From: Zygophlyctis sp. KS116
Lineage: Eukaryota; Fungi; Chytridiomycota
Assembly: GCA_054661495.1 (NCBI GenBank)
Contig: BAAFSQ010000379.1
Coordinates: forward strand, 1 to 8,424
Length of the DNA: 8,424 nucleotides
Direction: 5' to 3'
Shown here: in pieces, positions 1 through 8,424 of the stretch
Layout: every line of letters starts with the position of its first letter
Position numbering within the stretch: the stretch's first letter is position 1
Notes under the pieces: model-generated
The model's input: the letters and a program-made list of their open reading frames with translations, nothing else
Databases searched by the model: none
What the model was told of the DNA's origin: nothing
Position numbers and translations under genes: made by a program

Positions 1-366
1 TTAAAGGTATTATATGTAATATTAAAAATTGTAGGTAGGCTGCCCTGTTATTCTACTTCGCAACCTGAATTCAGCAGGAGGTTTATGTAAATGGGACCAG
101 ACTTATGATATTGTCTTAGAAATCTAATGTGGTAGAAGCTCAAATATTGGTTGGGCCTAACCAGAATCAAAAAGTTTTGATTCCAATGATAGATTTTATT
201 CCAGATAATAAGGAATTGCATTTTCAGTACAAAAGGAGACAGTTTCCTCTTAGGGTGTGCTATGCCATGACAATAAACAAAAGCCAGGGTAAAACGATTG
301 GAAAGGTTGGGCTCAATTGGTCTCAGGAAGTGTTCACCCACGGACAGCTTTACGTGGCTCTTTCAA
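1..366 (+). pseudogene. Helitron-type Pif1 (SF1B) helicase, C-terminal fragment, disabled
   Basis: Removing intron 7..34 gives LK|VGCPVILLRNLNSAGGLC, then a +1 frameshift (extra A ~89), then NGTRLMILS*KSNVVEAQIL...RRQFPLRVCYAMTINKSQGKT...VFTHGQLYVALS. These are Pif1/Helitron helicase signature, motif V and motif VI sequences. In-frame TAG at 117-119. Similarity ends just before the conserved R of YVALSR. Confidence 0.9.
7..34 (+). other. 28-nt spliceosomal intron
   Basis: GTATTA...TTGTAG; removal joins LK to VGCPVILLRNL, the contiguous Pif1 motif. Confidence 0.8.
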
Positions 367-367
367 T

Positions 368-454
368 AGACTACTCAAGATAAACTTTGTTTATCTTTTG
401 ACAACTAAACCCTATCAGTTCACAGTCACACTTCTGAGGAGTCAAATTTTAACT
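368..454 (-). repeat. Putative 3' LTR remnant (~85 bp)
   Basis: Lies directly after the PPT and ends where helicase similarity begins. Contains a 9-bp-stem hairpin (377-397). No partner LTR is present to confirm it. Confidence 0.5.
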
Positions 455-3400
455 CTCTCCCTGACTCTTGAAGTGTGATACTCCAAAATTCTTCATCATA
501 TCTCTTAATTGACATCCAGAAACTCCTTTTGTGAATACATCTGCAAGTTGATCTTTAGTTGGACAGTAGACAAATTTGATTAATTCTTTTGCCACATAGT
601 CTCTTATTACATGGAATCTAACTTGAATATGCTTGGTTCTCTTATGATCTTCAGGATTTTTGGTTAGAGATATACATGCTTGATTATCTTCGAAAATAGT
701 GACAGTCTTCTGAGGAAATCCCATATCATCTAGTAGCTGTCTTAACCAAATTGCTTCATTTCCAGCTGATACTGCAGCATAGTATTCTGATTCTGCTGAA
801 GATTGAGCAACTATTTTCTGTCTTCCAGAGTACCAACTAATCAGTCCACCAGCCAACATGAATCCATAGCCTGATCTAGACTGATATTCAGTTTCGTTTG
901 CATATGATGCATCGACATAACCTATAATTTCCATACTACTAGTTGTTTGATACCTCAACTTGTAATCCAAGCTTCCAGCAACATATTTTAAAATTTGTTT
1001 GACTAGTTTTATGTGAGTGAGCTTTGGCCTTTCTAGAAATTGACTGACGACCGAAATTGAACATGCTAAATCTGGTCTTGTTCCCAACATTGCATACATC
1101 AAACTGCCAACTATTCTTCTATATGGGAACCCAGTGGTATCACAGGTTTCTGACTCAGCATCTTGTAGAAGTTTTTGATAGTTAGATGGCAGTGGGCTTG
1201 AGGCTTTTTCTTTACCAACGTAGTCTTTAAATTCTTCCAGCTTCTGTTTGAGATAAACTGTCTGATCTAGGTCAATAACTCCCTGAGTATCCTGATGGAA
1301 GGCGATTCCGAGATACCACTCTAGTAGTCCTCCTTCTGCGATTGAAAATTCTTTTCTTAACTCATTCCTAAATGGTTCGACGTGATGTGGTAAACCAATT
1401 GTCTTTATATCATCAACGTAGACTCCTACAATCAATCTCCCCTTATATATCTTCTCTGTATTGATATATATGCAAGGATCTGCCTTAGATTGTACAAATT
1501 CTTTTGAAACAAGATAATTGTGAATAACTGCATTCCATTCTCTTGGTGATTGTTTGAGACCATAGATAGTCTTATTCAAGAGACAAAATTCATTTGATTC
1601 ATTTGATTCATATCCCTCTGGCTGACTCATCCAGACCGTTTCCTTCAGGTCCCCTTGCAAGAAGGCTGACGGCACATCATCTTGATATGCTGTAAGTTTC
1701 AGTTGGGCACAGACAGCCGCTAAAGTTCTCATGGACTTGAACTTTAGGACCGGAGCATATGTCTCTACAAAGTCAATTCCTTCGATTTGACTAAAACCTT
1801 TTGCAACAAACCTGGCTTTGAGTTTTTTCACATTTCCATATCTATCATATTTCTTTGTAAATACCCATTTCGATTTGACTGCCTTTACATCTTTAGGTTT
1901 AATTTTGATGTCCCAAGTATTGAAACGTTTCATTTGGCTCATTTCTGCGTCCATTGCTTCTCTCCATCCATCTTTGTCTTCTGATTGAATAGCCTCTTGA
2001 TATGTACGTGGGCAATCATTATGCATTGCCGCACTCATACACATAAATTGACTGATTGATAATTCGGTATTGCGACAGAGATTTACAAGTGATTCAATTG
2101 AAACTATTGAGGTATTGTTTGTCTGTCTGGTTTCTATATGTCCAAGATTTATTGCATCATCTAATTTCTTGTATGGATCAATCTCCTTGGATTCCTCCAT
2201 TTCATCATCAGAGTCAACTTCATGCCCTTTATTATTGTTCACTGTATCTTCATGATCCTTATCCAGAGATGAATAAAACTTATCTACATTATCCACTGGT
2301 TCTTCAAGGAATGTGATTTCGCTATTTTGCAGAAATGTAACATCCGGACTAAATATGATCTTTCTATCTAATTCTCTTAGTAATTTGTATCCTAATTTAT
2401 GCTCAAGAACAGAATCATCGTCTCCATATCCCAGAAATCTGCATCTCATTCCAGAATCCATGAGTTTACCTTTGAGCCTTTTTGCCTTCGGAACATGAAC
2501 ATAGCAGATTGATCCAAATGTCTTCAGTTTATTCAAATCAGGAGCCTTGCCATATATATGTTCATAAGGCGATTTTTCCTCAGAGTCCCTAATGATTCTA
2601 TTGATAGTATACACCACATATCTCTGTGCATCTGAGTAATATTTCAACGGCAATTTTGAGTCTGAATGACAACTCCTAGCCAATTCGGTGACCGTCCTGT
2701 GGGCTCTTTCTGCCCTAGCAGGTAGATGTTTGTGGGTAGGAGATGTGATCTGTTTGACTATTCCATGCGAAGTTAGGAAATCCTGAAAGACATTTTTATA
2801 TTCACTGCCTCCATCTACTCTTATACAGCGAATCTTTCGAGTCGTAACATTTTCAAATCTTGTTTTAAATATTTTGAAGGCTTCACATGCTGTAGCAGAG
2901 TTTAGTCTTTTAACAAAAACAGATGAAATCCAACCACTCTTTCTATCAATAAATTTCAGACTATGACTGAATCCATCATATGATTCTACAGGAAAAGGTG
3001 TTGAGTCTGACTCGATCATTTCCAATATATCATATGATTTCTTTGAATTTGATTGGCTTTTTCTAGAAACTGTCAGTTTACCACTTATACATTCCTCGCA
3101 ATCCTTAGAAACATTTTTGAAAGCAATATTATTTAGATGAAGGTTTCGAGTTATAGTGTTTTTATTGAAGTGTCCTAAACATTTGTGCCATTCATGTAAA
3201 TTCTTTTCCGGGGCTTTTACCAAGAATGAATTTCCAGTCTGCATTTCAATTAGACCACTGAGTGGGTTATATTCTCCTAATGCTAATATCTCGCCTGATT
3301 TGTTCAAAATTTTTAGAATGCCATCTTCAATAATTTGACTATATCCTTCCCTCATTATTTGTATTCCTGAAAGAAGGTTGTACTTGAACTGCGGAACATA

Positions 3401-3616
3401 TACTACATCCTTTAGTTTGAGGTTTCCAATTTCCACCTCACCAACTCCATATGTTGGTATTGTTTCATTTGATGCAGTTAAGACAGATCCGTGTTTGTCA
3501 ACCATATTGCGGGGCTTTTCTCTGAAGTATGATACAGGCGTACATCCGGTATCATATATTATTTTGCTGGGTGAATCAAAGACAGGAAAAGGTAGAAGAA
3601 GATTTATTCCCATCAT
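449..3616 (-). CDS. pol: Copia Pol polyprotein (protease, HHCC/integrase, reverse transcriptase, RNase H)
   Basis: Protease YDTGC; WHKCLGH...CEEC; integrase ESD / VDGGSEY / AER; RT LKARFVAKGFSQIEGIDF, YGLKQSPREW, VYVDD; RNase H YVDAS, AESEY, EDNQ, ADVFTK. 1055 codons with no stop. The true entry point is probably ~3577 by frameshift rather than the ATG at 3616. Confidence 0.96.
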   Translation of the reverse strand: MMGINLLLPFPVFDSPSKIIYDTGCTPVSYFREKPRNMVDKHGSVLTASNETIPTYGVGEVEIGNLKLKDVVYVPQFKYNLLSGIQIMREGYSQIIEDGILKILNKSGEILALGEYNPLSGLIEMQTGNSFLVKAPEKNLHEWHKCLGHFNKNTITRNLHLNNIAFKNVSKDCEECISGKLTVSRKSQSNSKKSYDILEMIESDSTPFPVESYDGFSHSLKFIDRKSGWISSVFVKRLNSATACEAFKIFKTRFENVTTRKIRCIRVDGGSEYKNVFQDFLTSHGIVKQITSPTHKHLPARAERAHRTVTELARSCHSDSKLPLKYYSDAQRYVVYTINRIIRDSEEKSPYEHIYGKAPDLNKLKTFGSICYVHVPKAKRLKGKLMDSGMRCRFLGYGDDDSVLEHKLGYKLLRELDRKIIFSPDVTFLQNSEITFLEEPVDNVDKFYSSLDKDHEDTVNNNKGHEVDSDDEMEESKEIDPYKKLDDAINLGHIETRQTNNTSIVSIESLVNLCRNTELSISQFMCMSAAMHNDCPRTYQEAIQSEDKDGWREAMDAEMSQMKRFNTWDIKIKPKDVKAVKSKWVFTKKYDRYGNVKKLKARFVAKGFSQIEGIDFVETYAPVLKFKSMRTLAAVCAQLKLTAYQDDVPSAFLQGDLKETVWMSQPEGYESNESNEFCLLNKTIYGLKQSPREWNAVIHNYLVSKEFVQSKADPCIYINTEKIYKGRLIVGVYVDDIKTIGLPHHVEPFRNELRKEFSIAEGGLLEWYLGIAFHQDTQGVIDLDQTVYLKQKLEEFKDYVGKEKASSPLPSNYQKLLQDAESETCDTTGFPYRRIVGSLMYAMLGTRPDLACSISVVSQFLERPKLTHIKLVKQILKYVAGSLDYKLRYQTTSSMEIIGYVDASYANETEYQSRSGYGFMLAGGLISWYSGRQKIVAQSSAESEYYAAVSAGNEAIWLRQLLDDMGFPQKTVTIFEDNQACISLTKNPEDHKRTKHIQVRFHVIRDYVAKELIKFVYCPTKDQLADVFTKGVSGCQLRDMMKNFGVSHFKSQGES
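453..462 (-). promoter_or_regulatory. Polypurine tract (plus-strand primer site)
   Basis: AGGGAGAGAG on the minus strand overlapping the last pol codons, the usual Copia position. Confidence 0.8.
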
Positions 3617-4262
3617 TCTCTATCAAATTTGCCTGCTTCTTGTTAAATCCTTCCACATCACCATAAAAGCATTTCTCAGTATCATGACTGTTACTAAGTT
3701 TTTTGCGCCATTTCAAACAATAGTCGCATGTCTTTTTGCTACTAGGTTTAGTTGCATTCAAAGCATTCGCCAGTTTGATGGTAGGATCAAACGGTGTTTG
3801 ATCTACTTTAATCCTTTTGTTTCGTCTAGCATCCCAAAACTTCCAAATCTTTTGTCTTATTTTTGACAAATCCGAAAAAACTTGATCATCTAGCTCATTA
3901 AGTCTTCCTCTCATTTCAGCCCAGAAATCACTATTTTCGACAAAGACAGAGTTTGCTCCTCTAGTACAAGATAGTCCTTCCTCAAAGACATTTCTGAGAA
4001 AGTCAACCGTACTTTTACCATTGCATAATTCTAGAATATCTAACTGTTTACCAAGCCATAGAAAAACTTGATTTGGGTCTTTTCCAATGGGAAATTGAAT
4101 CAACGATATGACTGTTTGTTTTTGGTTTGATGGTGAATAGTTTCCATATCCAAAAATTTCATTCAATCTGTCAAGAACGACATTTATGGACTGTGTAGGG
4201 TCAATGGGGCTTATCGCCTCGTCACTAATATTTCCTATAACCCATTTTTTTGCTGCCTTAGG
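3576..4262 (-). CDS. gag: Copia Gag, N-terminally truncated, with variant zinc knuckle
   Basis: The frame stays open upstream of the track start (4166) as KAAKKWVIGNISDEAISPIDPTQSINVVLDRLNEIFG, with no ATG before it enters the repeat block (stop at 4293-4295). C-terminal CDYC-x10-H-x4-C. Sits immediately upstream of pol. Confidence 0.8.
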   Translation of the reverse strand, partial: PKAAKKWVIGNISDEAISPIDPTQSINVVLDRLNEIFGYGNYSPSNQKQTVISLIQFPIGKDPNQVFLWLGKQLDILELCNGKSTVDFLRNVFEEGLSCTRGANSVFVENSDFWAEMRGRLNELDDQVFSDLSKIRQKIWKFWDARRNKRIKVDQTPFDPTIKLANALNATKPSSKKTCDYCLKWRKKLSNSHDTEKCFYGDVEGFNKKQANLIENDGNKSSSTFSCL

Positions 4263-4266
4263 ATTA

Positions 4267-4515
4267 TATACTCTCTTTATATCTCTTTGACTTTAATGAT
4301 AAACTTTCAACATTCAACTTTTGGAAATAATTAATGTACGATGGTAAACTTTCAACTTTCAACATTAAACTCAACTTTTTATTCCCTTCTTATACTCTCT
4401 TATCTATTATACTCTCTTTATATCTCTTTGACTTTAATGATAAACTGTCAACATTCAACTTTCGGAAATTATTAATGTACGATGGTAAACTTTCAACTTT
4501 CAACATTTAACTCAA
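4267..4515. repeat. Two direct repeats of ~108 bp, period 141 bp
   Basis: 4267-4374 vs 4408-4515, 4 mismatches by eye; internally rich in TTTCAAC units. Confidence 0.93.
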
Positions 4516-4533
4516 ATTTCAACTTTCGGGAAA

Positions 4534-4585
4534 AGTATGATATTATAATAATATCATACTGCATAAATAATATTATTATTTATGC
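4534..4585. repeat. Two abutting perfect palindromes
   Basis: AGTATGATATTAT-A-ATAATATCATACT (4534-4560) directly followed by GCATAAATAATA-T-TATTATTTATGC (4561-4585). Confidence 0.93.
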
Positions 4586-5257
4586 CTGCCTCCGTAGGAT
4601 CCGCTACGCTGCGCTACGTTTCCCCTCGGCAGCGCATTCTTTTTTTCTTGAAATATTGGATGAACGACCCTGGGGATCAATCGTAGGCGTCACGCCATGA
4701 AAGGGACAACGCTATCGCTCAAGGCCCCTTTCTTATGGTCTTCGCTATAGAGATTTGGCTTAAAATTCAAGAAAAAGATAAGTTTATAATGGGATTTATT
4801 TCAATGTTTTTCAAACAAACATATTATACTTATCTAAGTCTTTTCAAGTTCTTGGAATTACTTTCACTGTTTCGAGATCTTCAATTGATTTCGTTTCTAA
4901 TTGCTAATTTTTTAAGAAACATACTTACTGTTATTTTGATCAGCGGTCTCGTTATCCAACGTAATGTCCTTCCTAGTGTTTCTTGAGCAGCTTCAACAAA
5001 AGGGGGGTAATCTCTAACAACAATATCTGAATAATACTTTGGTTTCAAGTTACTGGCCTTAATCAGATGATTGCAAATAAAGAATGTGGAGTGTTTAAAT
5101 TTAACCTAGAATCAGTAATATTTAAATTATCCATCCATTCTCTCATCATTTCCTTGAACCAAAGTGGAGTTCTAATTCTTTTTTCTGTTTCTTTGTATTT
5201 GATAATAAAAGACGGTAGAAGCCATTTGCAAGTTATAAGAAGACACGATTTGATAGT

Positions 5258-5282
5258 CTATAGTTATTTCAGAATATATTAC
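5258..5282 (-). other. 25-nt intron in MULE transposase
   Basis: GTAATA...CTATAG; removal switches to the frame giving RPTIKSCLLITCKWLLP...WFKEMMREW. Confidence 0.75.
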
Positions 5283-5510
5283 TGGCCTTCCAAACATTGA
5301 AAAGTAATCTCTTTTTAATATCCTAAAATGGGATTCCGCAAACATAGATGTTCTATACCTGCATAAAACTCCTGGCCTTGCAGATCGCATCCAAATCTTG
5401 CTATTTTTTAAATTGTAACATTCATTATAAAGATAACATAATGCATCTGAAAGTTTTTTATCCAGGCAATAAAAACTGGGTTGACTTTCAATGATTTTAA
5501 ACAATTGAAC

Positions 5511-5534
5511 CTTTAAATTTAGTTAATAATTTAC
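5511..5534 (-). other. 24-nt intron in MULE transposase
   Basis: GTAAAT...TTAAAG contains the in-frame stop; removal gives IKQW|FNCLKSLKVNPVF. Confidence 0.75.
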
Positions 5535-5845
5535 CATTGTTTGATAGCAAATTTTCTTTGAGTTTCTTCAACTCTTCTTTCTAAATATAAATAGCTGGCT
5601 GGATATCCTTCACCATGAAATAATAAAATTATGACAAAAAGTTCGAAACCTTCACGATTCGACTTAAATGTCGAATCAACAAATAGGTATCTGCAGTTTA
5701 GAGCAATAAAAGAAGTTATGAAACAAACGTGCTTTTGATTGATATTCAGGGAGAAACTGCGATAGTTGTAGTTTTGTAGGATAGAAAATCCATTATCATC
5801 TATCAAATCCTCAGTCCTGTGAACTTTACACCAAATGTAAGAAAT

Positions 5846-5872
5846 CTATTATTAATATACAGTTTTAATTAC
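5846..5872 (-). other. 27-nt intron in MULE transposase
   Basis: GTAATT...TAATAG contains three in-frame stops; removal fuses ORF 5852..6157 to ORF 5531..5806. Confidence 0.85.
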
Positions 5873-6200
5873 CTGGCTAAGAGTTAAATCCAATAACTCT
5901 TCAACAGGGTTTTCAGATTTTAAAAGTTTTAAAATCTGACCAGGAGACGATTTTATACACATTTCCTTAATTCTATTTATCAAACTTTCATCTAAGTTTT
6001 TTTTTACTTTTTGATGGTTCACATCATGTTGAACCATGACTGAAAAAAAAGACTCAGTAGAATTGATATAAAAGCGACCATTGCAATTGAACTTTTCTGA
6101 GCCGTATTTTAGCCTTTTTCTTTCTTCAGGGCCTTGTCTTTCATAATATGTTGACAAACTACAAAAACCGTACCAAGCGACATCCGTTTTTTTGTCGAAT

Positions 6201-6225
6201 CTGATATTTAACTAAATTAATTTAC
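6201..6225 (-). other. 25-nt intron in MULE transposase
   Basis: GTAAAT...TATCAG; removal joins WDKYGYRF in frame to DKKTDVAWYGFCSLSTYY. Confidence 0.82.
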
Positions 6226-6600
6226 AGAAATCTATATCCATACTTGTCCCAAATTAAGTTTGAAAATTCTTGTGCGAAATCTTCGATATTTAGATCCATT
6301 AAACTTCTTTTACTTAATAGCAATTAGGTTTGAGGAAAAAGCTCGGCATGGTTTAAGCTTTCAATATCGTCAAGGTATTGAAACTTAGTAACTGTTTCAT
6401 TTTTTAAACAACGATTACAAAGTTTGTTTAGCTTGGCTTTTGGTCCAATATGCTCAATTGGCAGCGTAAATCTGTTGCACTTTGGACAGTACATTTTAAC
6501 CATACCCCTAAGAGGAAAAGCAATATTCGTTTATCATAGATCTGTTATTTTGTGGATTTTATGGCCAACATTACGAAAACTAAGGTGTTAAGCATTTCAT

Positions 6601-6920
6601 TCACTTACATAGATTTTTTCTACCTTTTTTCTTTGTCGGCCTATATTATTAAACAACAAATTTTACGTTTCTAAACTTATCATTGACATGCTCCTCTTTA
6701 TGACAGGAGAAGATTCATACCCTTCGGAGGTGAGCATTAGGAATATAATTTGTTAGAAAGGCAGACTAAAATAGTTCAATATATCAGCTAAATCGTCACA
6801 GAAACTTATGTTTTCAACTTCCTGATTTCCTAGGCATTTTGAGCATAAGTTATTTATTTTTCCTTTTTCACCAATGTGGGACTTTAGCATAGTGAATTTT
6901 TCACATTTCCGACAATACAT
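6601..6920 (-). pseudogene. Zinc-ribbon mini-gene or fragment paralogous to the transposase N-terminus
   Basis: ORF 6753..6920 reads MYCRKC...LCSKCL (55 aa, absent from the ORF track). The same frame continues past TAA and, after a candidate 26-nt intron (6641-6666), ends ETPTKKKGRKNLCK* at 6601. Confidence 0.65.
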
Positions 6921-7406
6921 CACCAATTTTTTTATACAGTTTAAGATCGTGATTTATTTTTTATACACTTTTAGATCGAAAGCAGCTTCATTCACATAGT
7001 TTCATCAATTACAGTTATAGATTCATCTAACTGATGCTTGTCCAGACGAAAAAGCTTGAATCTCGCTCTACCAGTTGGGGTAGAATTGATTGAGCTAGAG
7101 TTAAGCTTGACCAGTTTTATCACGTTTCCCTTTAATATTATCTTAATATAAAATACCCCTCTGTTTCGGTTAGAGGTACTTGGTGTTTTACTAACTTTTC
7201 CGAGTCCTGCCATTCCAATAAGATCCAAAGTACTTTCAATTAATGAATCAGAGTTGGTAATTATATTCCCAGGAAAATACAATACTCTTTTAACACTCGT
7301 TTCAGGATGAATACATACAATAAAATTTAAGGCAACATTCTTGTTATACACTTGAAATTTCCACCACCGTGGAAATTCAAATACATAGAACGAAATTTAT
7401 TCTCAT

Positions 7407-7432
7407 CTACACTTACTTTAATTATAAAATAC
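7407..7432 (-). other. 26-nt intron in DUF3987-like gene
   Basis: GTATTT...GTGTAG; removal gives LYSLK|DENKFRSMYLNFHGG. Confidence 0.75.
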
Positions 7433-7786
7433 CTTTTAGACTGTATAGCTTGTTGAAAAAGGATTCAGCTTCATTGGCTACTTGAATCATTTCGCCGTTA
7501 TTAATCATGAGCTGGTTGGTGAGCCCTTCTAAGGTCCCCTCCAAGAAAACCAAATCCATATTAGCATCATCAGAACGTCTTAAATATGAGCGAAGTGGAT
7601 CTAAAATAGCTTTCAAAATTGGAGATTTTTTAGTGCCCTTTCTGCCAACTAATAACGAGAACATAATTATCGGTTCTTCCCAGTTAAGAGTAGAGTCGGC
7701 AGCAACAAAAGAATTAGATCCTATTAGAAGGCAAACGACTGGCAATAATACAGTCAATACAGCTATAGGATCTCCCTAAGACATCG

Positions 7787-7811
7787 CTAGAGTTAAACAA
7801 TAAAAAAGCAC
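7787..7811 (-). other. 25-nt intron in DUF3987-like gene
   Basis: GTGCTT...CTCTAG; removal joins LLNTI in frame to AMS*GDPIAVLTVLLP. Confidence 0.6.
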
Positions 7812-8080
7812 CGATGGTATTTAACAAAATAGCAGATTTTTCACCGCATACTGTTTCTATTCCTGGTATCACGGCTAATGAATCGCCTACTCTAGAGTCA
7901 AAACACGTTTTTACCGTTGATTAACCAAGTCTTCCATGTCAGACTTAAAGCTTTCTTTGAGGGACTAACTATTAGTTAAAAAATTTTACGTTTCAAATTG
8001 ACCTGAGGAACTCTTTTTCTGAGGAGTTTGAGGATCTACGGCCATCATTTTGAATAATTTAGAAAAACAATTCCTAGAAA

Positions 8081-8227
8081 ACGCGACACGAAATCGGCGC
8101 GAAATCAATGAATCGTAAAAATTACGTCAGAATCGAAATTTGACCAATCATATTTAATTAAATATTCCGAAATTTGAAAGTTGAAAATTGAAAAAGAAAA
8201 TTTATCGTGAGAGTTGAACTTACGTCA
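8081..8227 (-). promoter_or_regulatory. Putative promoter of the DUF3987-like gene
   Basis: Motifs read on the + strand: ACGCG 8081-8085, CACGAAA 8087-8093, GGCGCGAAA 8096-8104, TTACGTCA 8122-8129 and 8220-8227, CCAAT 8144-8148; all upstream of ATG 8048. Confidence 0.5.
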
Positions 8228-8326
8228 TGAGAAATTTTTTCGGTCCGTTAGGCTCTCTTCACACGTTCTGATGTTGAAAGCTCCTTGAAGAAGATTTTCA
8301 CTGCTAGTAAAGTTATATAATCAACT

Positions 8327-8354
8327 CACTAGGTTATAAGTTATACACCTAGTG
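8327..8354. repeat. Inverted repeat / hairpin
   Basis: CACTAGGT-TATAA-G-TTATA-C-ACCTAGTG: 8-bp outer stem plus inner AT stem. Confidence 0.75.
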
Positions 8355-8424
8355 TCTCCTAACTACGTCGGTAAATAAAAATATGCGTGAGTTTAGCCAA
8401 CCAGTTATTTTTTCTGCAAATTTG

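Follow-up and report, generated by a model that had tools for sequence, protein, structure and literature searches.

A probable recombinant relic of a two-gene MULE transposon family with a DUF3987 AAA+ companion gene in the chytrid Zygophlyctis sp. KS116

Eukaryotic cut-and-paste transposons are generally thought to require a transposase alone. The locus described here raises the question of why, in the chytrid fungus Zygophlyctis sp. KS116, the remains of a gene for a helicase-like AAA+ ATPase with a DUF3987 domain precede those of a Mutator-like element (MULE) transposase gene on the same strand. The stretch analysed, called the window below, is the entire 8424-bp contig BAAFSQ010000379.1 (C379) of an AT-rich, eukaryotic assembly of 12.7 Mb in 1175 contigs, and repeats make up the whole of its 8.4 kb. 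We propose, with a probability of roughly 85%, that window positions 8259-4267 (minus strand) are a non-functional recombinant relic of a family of two-gene MULE DNA transposons, whose AAA+ protein works with the transposase. An earlier reading of the window from its letters alone (the sequence-only reading) had placed here a possible composite transposon with a nucleoside triphosphatase (NTPase) as its second gene; this holds for the family but not cleanly for the window copy, which is a truncated recombinant relic rather than an intact unit.

Gene models were built by script from intact relatives. The joined spliced proteins were used in scripts only, for lengths, motifs and substitution counts, and every database search and fold prediction was run on a single exon. 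Copies are named by contig, with locus labels as follows: C513 (L015), C138 (L016), C431 (L014), C815 (L057), C736 (L058) and C914 (L059). L050 is an environmental contig bearing a full-length element of a further subfamily.

The two-gene family and its transposition

The genome was searched with the element DNA and two exons, and about 40 loci were retrieved. At 12 genome loci the helicase-like gene is followed by the transposase gene on one strand, and at no locus with upstream sequence does anything other than the helicase-like gene stand before the transposase. Three copies (C513, C431 and C138) are complete, with lengths of 4.6-4.7 kb and a single pair of terminal inverted repeats (TIRs) around both genes; the complete elements contain just these two genes. 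TIRs are present in these three copies and in L050, with 23 of 23 bases complementary in C513 and pairing of 94% in C431, 95% in C138 and 96% in L050. The target duplications are of 9 bp in C513 (CACCAATCC) and in C431 (ATCCACAAC) and of 8-9 bp in C138, all three lying in the 8-11 bp range of MULEs. Further, C815 holds a paralogous empty site of the C513 insertion, with both flanks and the target present once. The two-gene unit transposes with the hallmarks of MULEs, and the fixed-order co-occurrence implied by a composite transposon is borne out by the colinear loci, the shared TIR pair, the target duplications and the empty site.

An intact family member, at about 4.6-4.9 kb, has TIRs of 22-32 bp with a few nonpalindromic bases outside them and inverted subterminal 12-mers. 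In most subfamilies examined, a 12-mer resembling CAACTTTCGGAA lies 80-110 nt from the 5' end and recurs in inverted orientation 190-240 nt from the 3' end, which makes it a likely candidate for a transposase-binding site. From the helicase stop to the transposase start there are 37-56 nt in C513, C138 and C431 and about 200 nt in L050; since a gap of 37-56 nt leaves little room for a separate promoter, this spacing suggests that the two genes share one transcript. The introns are tiny, as had been read from the window: GT-AG introns of 19-29 nt, at 5-9 per gene, occur in the intact copies, and the window has at least nine recognisable ones, of 24-27 nt.

Across four subfamilies (C513, C138, C431 and L050), synonymous differences are saturated at 0.71-0.78, and nonsynonymous differences come to 0.19-0.39 for the helicase-like gene and 0.34-0.44 for the transposase gene. 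Both genes are under purifying selection: with synonymous differences saturated and nonsynonymous ones lower, both have been kept by selection through the split of the subfamilies. The helicase-like protein is the better conserved of the two, with identities of 45-68% among these subfamilies, versus 38-49% for the transposase.

The same elements are found on environmental contigs from lake-type metagenomes. One of these, L054 (ENA ERZ28594211 scaffold_4384), is 99.5% identical to the C138 element across 4633 nt, and the metagenome scan yielded one short additional contig with the helicase-like gene alone. A further contig, L055 (NCBI GCA_039797175.1, JBDKIH010000138.1), consists of two intron-bearing eukaryotic transposons with 99% identity to the C138 copy and comes from a metagenome-assembled genome labelled Bacteroidota, into which it was probably mis-binned.

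The AAA+ protein and the transposase

The intact helicase-like protein comprises 512-523 amino acids encoded by a gene with 7-9 introns. That the window's P-loop protein belongs to DUF3987, as the sequence-only reading had supposed, was confirmed by a match of 27.3 bits to PF13148 (gathering cut-off, 27 bits) for window positions 7422-7757 and by one of 56.8 bits for the 199-amino-acid core exon of its intact relative C513 (L015:622-1218). The same window piece also matches PHROG 2373, annotated "DNA helicase," with an E-value of 4.5e-8. The AlphaFold model of the core exon (pLDDT 91) has structural matches among AAA+ proteins only. In Foldseek these are weak matches to MCM2/5, ClpX, the NrS-1 helicase domain and E1, with E-values of 4e-3 or worse; in VIA-align, ORC4/Cdc6, ClpA, TnsC and MCM are tied at Z-scores of 7.3-8.5. 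The relationship of DUF3987 to MCM consequently rests on published work (PMC4889955), with our core-exon matches tying MCM with other AAA+ proteins. The last exon is modelled as a winged helix (pLDDT 76), and all 50 of its top 50 matches are winged-helix domains (Z 6.0-7.3); a C-terminal winged helix has been described for DUF3987 helicases (PMC4889955).

When aligned with 66 distant DUF3987 proteins, the family retains the Walker A lysine, the Walker B glutamate and the arginine of the DGLxxR motif. The Walker B aspartate, present in 64 of the 66 distant proteins, is replaced by asparagine in 7/7 family members, giving a Walker B motif that reads NE where the DUF3987, or superfamily 6, signature of Walker A plus Walker B calls for DE. 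ATP-dependent 5'-3' unwinding has been demonstrated experimentally only for AgaPH, a bacterial PriCT-DUF3987 protein (PMC11724360).

In a search against 1.84 billion representatives, the core exon found 83 matches. The close ones (at least 56% identity) come from the same lineage, as short environmental fragments, and all others are prokaryote- or phage-type proteins at no more than 35% identity. All 10 distant matches sampled carry DUF3987, among them a Prim-Pol fusion and a cluster with an Alteromonas member. In the ESM Atlas, the closest clusters consist of DUF3987 proteins from tailed phages and bacteria. A sequence search of solved structures gave no match, and word searches with one helicase exon and one transposase exon recovered environmental fragments of the same lineage only.

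The intact transposase (711-729 amino acids; 5-7 introns) shows an N-terminal zinc ribbon, a MULE core and a SWIM finger pattern, with the motifs CxxC...CxxC (zinc ribbon), DSTFK(S/T)N, MDKD...CLWH, AESHFRILK and CxC...CxH (SWIM) in the gene models. The last of these is visible in the models, with an E-value of just 0.084 for Pfam SWIM. The exon with the second catalytic aspartate matches PF10551 (MULE; cut-off, 27.6 bits) at 29.1 bits in C513 (L015:3132-3353; E 1.3e-6) and at 23.8-27.5 bits, below the cut-off, in four other copies; it also matches IS256/IS1249 transposases weakly (E 1e-5 to 1e-4). On account of the MULE domain, the TIRs and the 9-bp duplications, the family belongs to the MULE (Mutator) superfamily. 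In the window, the exon bearing this domain is deleted, and membership follows from the 93-98% protein identity of the window's transposase to that of L050. The tandem of P-loop and transposase genes on one strand, as originally described, was recovered from a minus-strand PF13148 match and from homology of the transposase to a relative that matches PF10551.

The window copy and its surroundings

The element, read on the minus strand from 8259 to 4267, consists of the DUF3987 AAA+ gene followed by the MULE transposase gene, and falls into two parts of different origin, part A (8259-6753) and part B (6752-4267), the latter described with L050 as reference. Its features are as follows.

8260-8268, minus strand: flank next to the 5' end, with the expected 9-bp target site GAACGTGTG (minus strand), its length taken from the complete copies.
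8219-8259, minus strand: 5' terminus, comprising 7 nonpalindromic bases and then the TIR (8252-8219), from an alignment of 13 copy ends.
8165-8176, minus strand: forward subterminal 12-mer resembling CAACTTTCGGAA, a candidate transposase-binding site, with copies across most subfamilies examined.
6992-8048, minus strand: broken DUF3987 AAA+ gene (ATG at 8048, stop at 6994-6992), from Pfam, PHROG 2373 and the intact copies.
6753-6926, minus strand: first transposase exon of part A (CxxC...CxxC zinc ribbon), homologous to the N-terminal exon of intact copies.
6611-6752, minus strand: start of part B, 142 nt of L050-type 5' region (first helicase-gene exons) without a TIR, 98.6% identical to L050 343-484.
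4811-6503, minus strand: broken MULE transposase gene (ATG at 6503, stop at 4813-4811), from comparison with L050 and motif coordinates.
4267-4810, minus strand: 3' noncoding and subterminal region, from comparison with other copies and L050.
4035-4266, minus strand: adjoining Copia-type retrotransposon sequence; positions 1-232 of C723 match at 99% and then diverge, and C131 agrees with C723.

These limits replace the 4263-8227 first assigned to the element, on the basis of the aligned copy ends, the paralogs of the flank and the junction with Copia. The 5' boundary at 8259/8260 is set by paralogous copies of the flank in C736 and C815. The window has a single occurrence of the target-site motif GAACGTGTG, its counterpart being missing along with the 3' end of the element. 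The 46 nt of flank at 8260-8305 are themselves a fragment of another repeat, with copies at L058 (C736) 8-53 and L057 (C815) 1239-1285. Because C815 holds both a copy of this flank repeat and the paralog of the C513 empty site, the elements sit in repeat-rich DNA.

In part A, the P-loop protein is represented by open reading frame (ORF) pieces at 7872-6992 (minus strand). Its gene has introns at 7989-7965, 7914-7890, 7811-7787 and 7432-7407; the Walker A motif lies at 7646-7621 and the Walker B motif (NE) at 7481-7464. The gene is disrupted by an in-frame TAG at 7778-7776, a small frameshifting deletion near 7339-7318 and an internal deletion of 650-700 nt with its junction near 7297. Part A ends just past the first transposase exon, the remainder of that gene being absent; this exon (6926-6753) duplicates 6503-6324 of part B at the protein level only.

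Part B opens with the 142-nt L050-type stretch, which at 6611/6610 joins without a gap to L050 2216 and onward, upstream of the transposase gene, the helicase-like gene of L050 485-2215 (1731 nt) having been cleanly deleted. Its transposase gene is 97.1% identical to that of L050 over 1142 gapless nucleotides and then 91% identical with gaps, and transposase-homologous ORF pieces lie at 6503-4881. Introns are found at 6225-6201, 5872-5846, 5534-5511, 5282-5258 and 4928-4904, the motif of the first catalytic aspartate at 5680-5657 and that of the catalytic glutamate at 5342-5313. The reading frame meets a premature TAA at 6326-6324. The exon that codes for the second catalytic aspartate, on which the MULE domain lies in relatives, has been lost through a 373-nt deletion at about 5470 that has the microhomology TGGATAAA at its borders. 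A 43-nt deletion takes out the CxC half of the SWIM finger pattern, and further deletions of 1 nt and of 169 nt (at about 4890) occur. The decay of both genes noted at the outset is thus apparent as stops, a frameshift and deletions in one or the other.

The 3' region of part B carries inverted 12-mers of the CAACTTTCGGAA type at 4531, 4467 and 4326. It also contains a tandem duplication of 141 bp (4267-4378 and 4408-4519). Its final 107 nt or so, with the 3' TIR, are absent, the element being cut at 4266/4267 against a 5'-truncated Copia element. The TIR core has a single occurrence in the window, whereas the same TIR has an inverted partner in C431, C513, C138 and L050. No second TIR was found in the window with up to 3 mismatches allowed, and the missing 3' end was not found below the Copia element (window 1-480). 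Of the inverted bracketing originally proposed, then, the subterminal 12-mers stand (forward at 8176 and inverted at the three positions above), but the true TIR lies at 8252-8219 only. Nor does the transposase have a TIR of its own between 6504 and 6990, where the junction of parts A and B and the 142-nt L050-type piece are located. The window copy encodes neither protein and, having a single end, is not mobilisable.

The window's helicase-like protein is closest to those of C167 (76%) and C484 (73%) and shares 60% identity with that of L050, with which, as noted, its transposase agrees far more closely; judged by these identities, the window's two genes stem from different subfamilies. Nesting, with part B inserted into part A, was considered and rejected: part A does not continue beyond part B, and part B is missing its TIR and the first 190 nt or so of its own 5' end. 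The chimera probably arose by template switching, or by deletion between two copies, followed by decay.

Past the transposase stop lies a G+C-rich block of about 60 nt (4642-4583) whose identity is 94% to C598 and C837 and 82% to C513, the surrounding DNA of these copies being only about 70% identical. It may be a cis-acting element, and its predicted RNA fold is weakly better than that of shuffled sequences (z = -2.0). An Rfam scan of window 4200-8424 gave a sub-threshold microRNA match and nothing else.

The Copia-type retrotransposon occupies window 449-4266 (minus strand) and has an intact pol ORF of 1055 amino acids and a gag ORF; no long terminal repeats (LTRs) of it were found within the window. 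On the 5' side it breaks off at 4266. Since other Copia copies continue upstream at the point where the window turns into the DNA transposon, both elements are truncated at 4266/4267. Of the sequence that follows the pol stop, only some 84 nt (window 367-450) match LTR-side sequence of the C723 copy (L033 482-565) at 98.8%. On the plus strand, window 129-383 holds an 84-amino-acid ORF with weak matches to helicase C-terminal domains (Herpes_Helicase, E 3.9e-4; UvrD_C_2, E 0.05), which is probably a fragment of a Pif1/Helitron-type helicase adjoining the truncated Copia. At the other end, the last 70 nt of the contig (window 8352-8424) are 90% identical to C914 (L059 1093-1170), where the matching sequence follows the 3' subterminal region of another copy and starts with a TIR-like CTCCTAAC...CGG motif; this stretch may represent one end of elements of a related family.

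Role of the companion gene and competing explanations

The family is a MULE, a known kind of transposon, with an apparently undescribed DUF3987 AAA+ companion gene. To our knowledge, the known MULE accessory genes (mudrB, mutB and vanB/vanC) do not encode NTPases. MULEs with two ORFs have been described as mudrA plus mudrB in maize, mutA plus mutB in the Mutyl element of Yarrowia and vanA plus vanB/vanC in VANDAL/Hiun of Arabidopsis, and no NTPase is among the accessory genes listed (PMC6446971). The family shares with them a DDE transposase of the MULE/IS256 lineage, TIRs, target duplications of 8-11 bp and a second element-encoded ORF (PMC6446971). Unlike theirs, its second ORF encodes a DUF3987 AAA+ ATPase with a winged helix and, in the same orientation, precedes the transposase. 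Full-text searches of the literature on DUF3987 with transposons, helicases or fungi, on MULE accessory ATPases and on MULEs and fungal transposons yielded no description of a MULE paired with DUF3987, in agreement with the initial impression that this is not a described family.

The DUF3987 helicases (superfamily 6, MCM related) known from phages and from mobile elements of bacteria and archaea, such as AgaPH, resemble the family protein in the Pfam match, the AAA+ core, Walker A, the Walker B glutamate, the arginine and the winged helix (PMC4889955; PMC11724360). The family protein differs in being eukaryotic, with 7-9 spliceosomal introns, in its Walker B asparagine and in having at most 35% identity to its nearest prokaryotic relatives. 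It also differs in having no primase partner: neither association nor fusion with a primase of the archaeo-eukaryotic (AEP) or DnaG type was found, the complete elements holding two genes only. DUF3987-type helicases have not been found in eukaryotic viruses (PMC4889955). A functional parallel is suggested by Mu (MuA/MuB), Tn7 (TnsB/TnsC) and IS21 (IstA/IstB), in which a single mobile unit likewise pairs a DDE transposase gene with an adjacent AAA+ gene. The best structural matches of the family's AAA+ core, which are tied, include TnsC (Z 8.0, 7.4 and 6.8) along with ORC/Cdc6, Clp and MCM; no sequence-level relationship to MuB, TnsC or IstB is shown, and the parallel would be one of analogy.

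Several points weigh against the proposed reading. L050 has no clean target duplication. Further, as the Walker B aspartate is asparagine across the family, the AAA+ protein may not be a processive motor. Its participation in transposition is something that we infer, and the splicing and expression of both genes are predicted. Finally, a single short-read-like contig underlies the junctions at 6753/6752 and 4266/4267, which might be products of the assembly.

The explanations that compete with it differ in how much of this they take up. The helicase-like gene might be passive cargo, captured once in the manner of Pack-MULEs, possibly after horizontal transfer from a phage or a bacterial mobile element, with no role in transposition. 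MULEs are indeed known to acquire extra ORFs and host gene fragments (PMC6446971), the Walker B substitution would be at home in such cargo, and the element is without the primase or polymerase that is the usual neighbour of DUF3987 helicases (PMC4889955). Pack-MULEs, however, while alike in carrying nontransposase coding sequence, bear host gene fragments without a transposase, whereas full-length copies of the family have an intact transposase and a complete, selected gene. We consider passive cargo improbable, given that the helicase-like gene is intact in four subfamilies at synonymous saturation and better conserved than the transposase, that it keeps the same position and strand, with the short spacing in 3 of 4 intact copies, that the Walker A lysine, the Walker B glutamate and the DGLxxR arginine are retained and that every copy inspected lies in a transposon context or at a contig end.

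The tandem in the window might alternatively be an artefact of assembly, two repeat copies and a Copia element having been misjoined without a real locus behind them. Many copies stop at contig ends in this assembly of 1175 contigs, the window contig is all repeats, and parts A and B come from different subfamilies. Against this, comparison of the sequence on either side of 6753/6752, and likewise of 4266/4267, shows no long identity by which an assembler might have been misled, and genuine DNA transposons in decay typically bear internal deletions at short microhomologies, as TGGATAAA illustrates for the 373-nt deletion; an artefact is hence an unlikely account, on a par with that of cargo. 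That the two genes are unrelated chance neighbours, a MULE beside an independent helicase gene or element, can be dismissed, for although the window's genes do derive from different copies, the 12 colinear loci, the four complete elements with one TIR pair enclosing the two genes and the empty site contradict it.

Under the preferred reading, that of a two-gene MULE family whose AAA+ protein works with its transposase, the transposase would bind the TIR and the subterminal 12-mers and then carry out cut-and-paste transposition, with the AAA+ protein acting alongside it on DNA. One possibility is that the latter serves as a helicase opening DNA during excision, repair or copying. Another is that it is an ATP-dependent switch in target capture or in the assembly of the complex, like MuB, TnsC and IstB. 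The switch appears somewhat more likely than the helicase, because Walker B has an asparagine, the element has no primase and the two genes are so tightly linked. More tentatively, and with considerable doubt, we raise the idea that the transposase cannot do without the DUF3987 AAA+ protein, an ATP-dependent partner recruited from a phage or plasmid replication module, and that the Asp-to-Asn change turned a helicase into a slow ATP switch. If so, the pair would be a eukaryotic counterpart of MuA/MuB, TnsB/TnsC and IstA/IstB, and the AAA+ protein would select targets or assemble the transposition complex.

The window copy itself offers an example of how such elements decay, through loss of the helicase-like gene, microhomology-mediated loss of a catalytic exon and recombination between subfamilies. 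For the family, a selected, phage-type AAA+ gene beside a transposase points to transfer from the prokaryotic mobilome to a eukaryotic transposon, with introns gained later, and to possible two-protein transposition, as in Mu, Tn7 and IS21.

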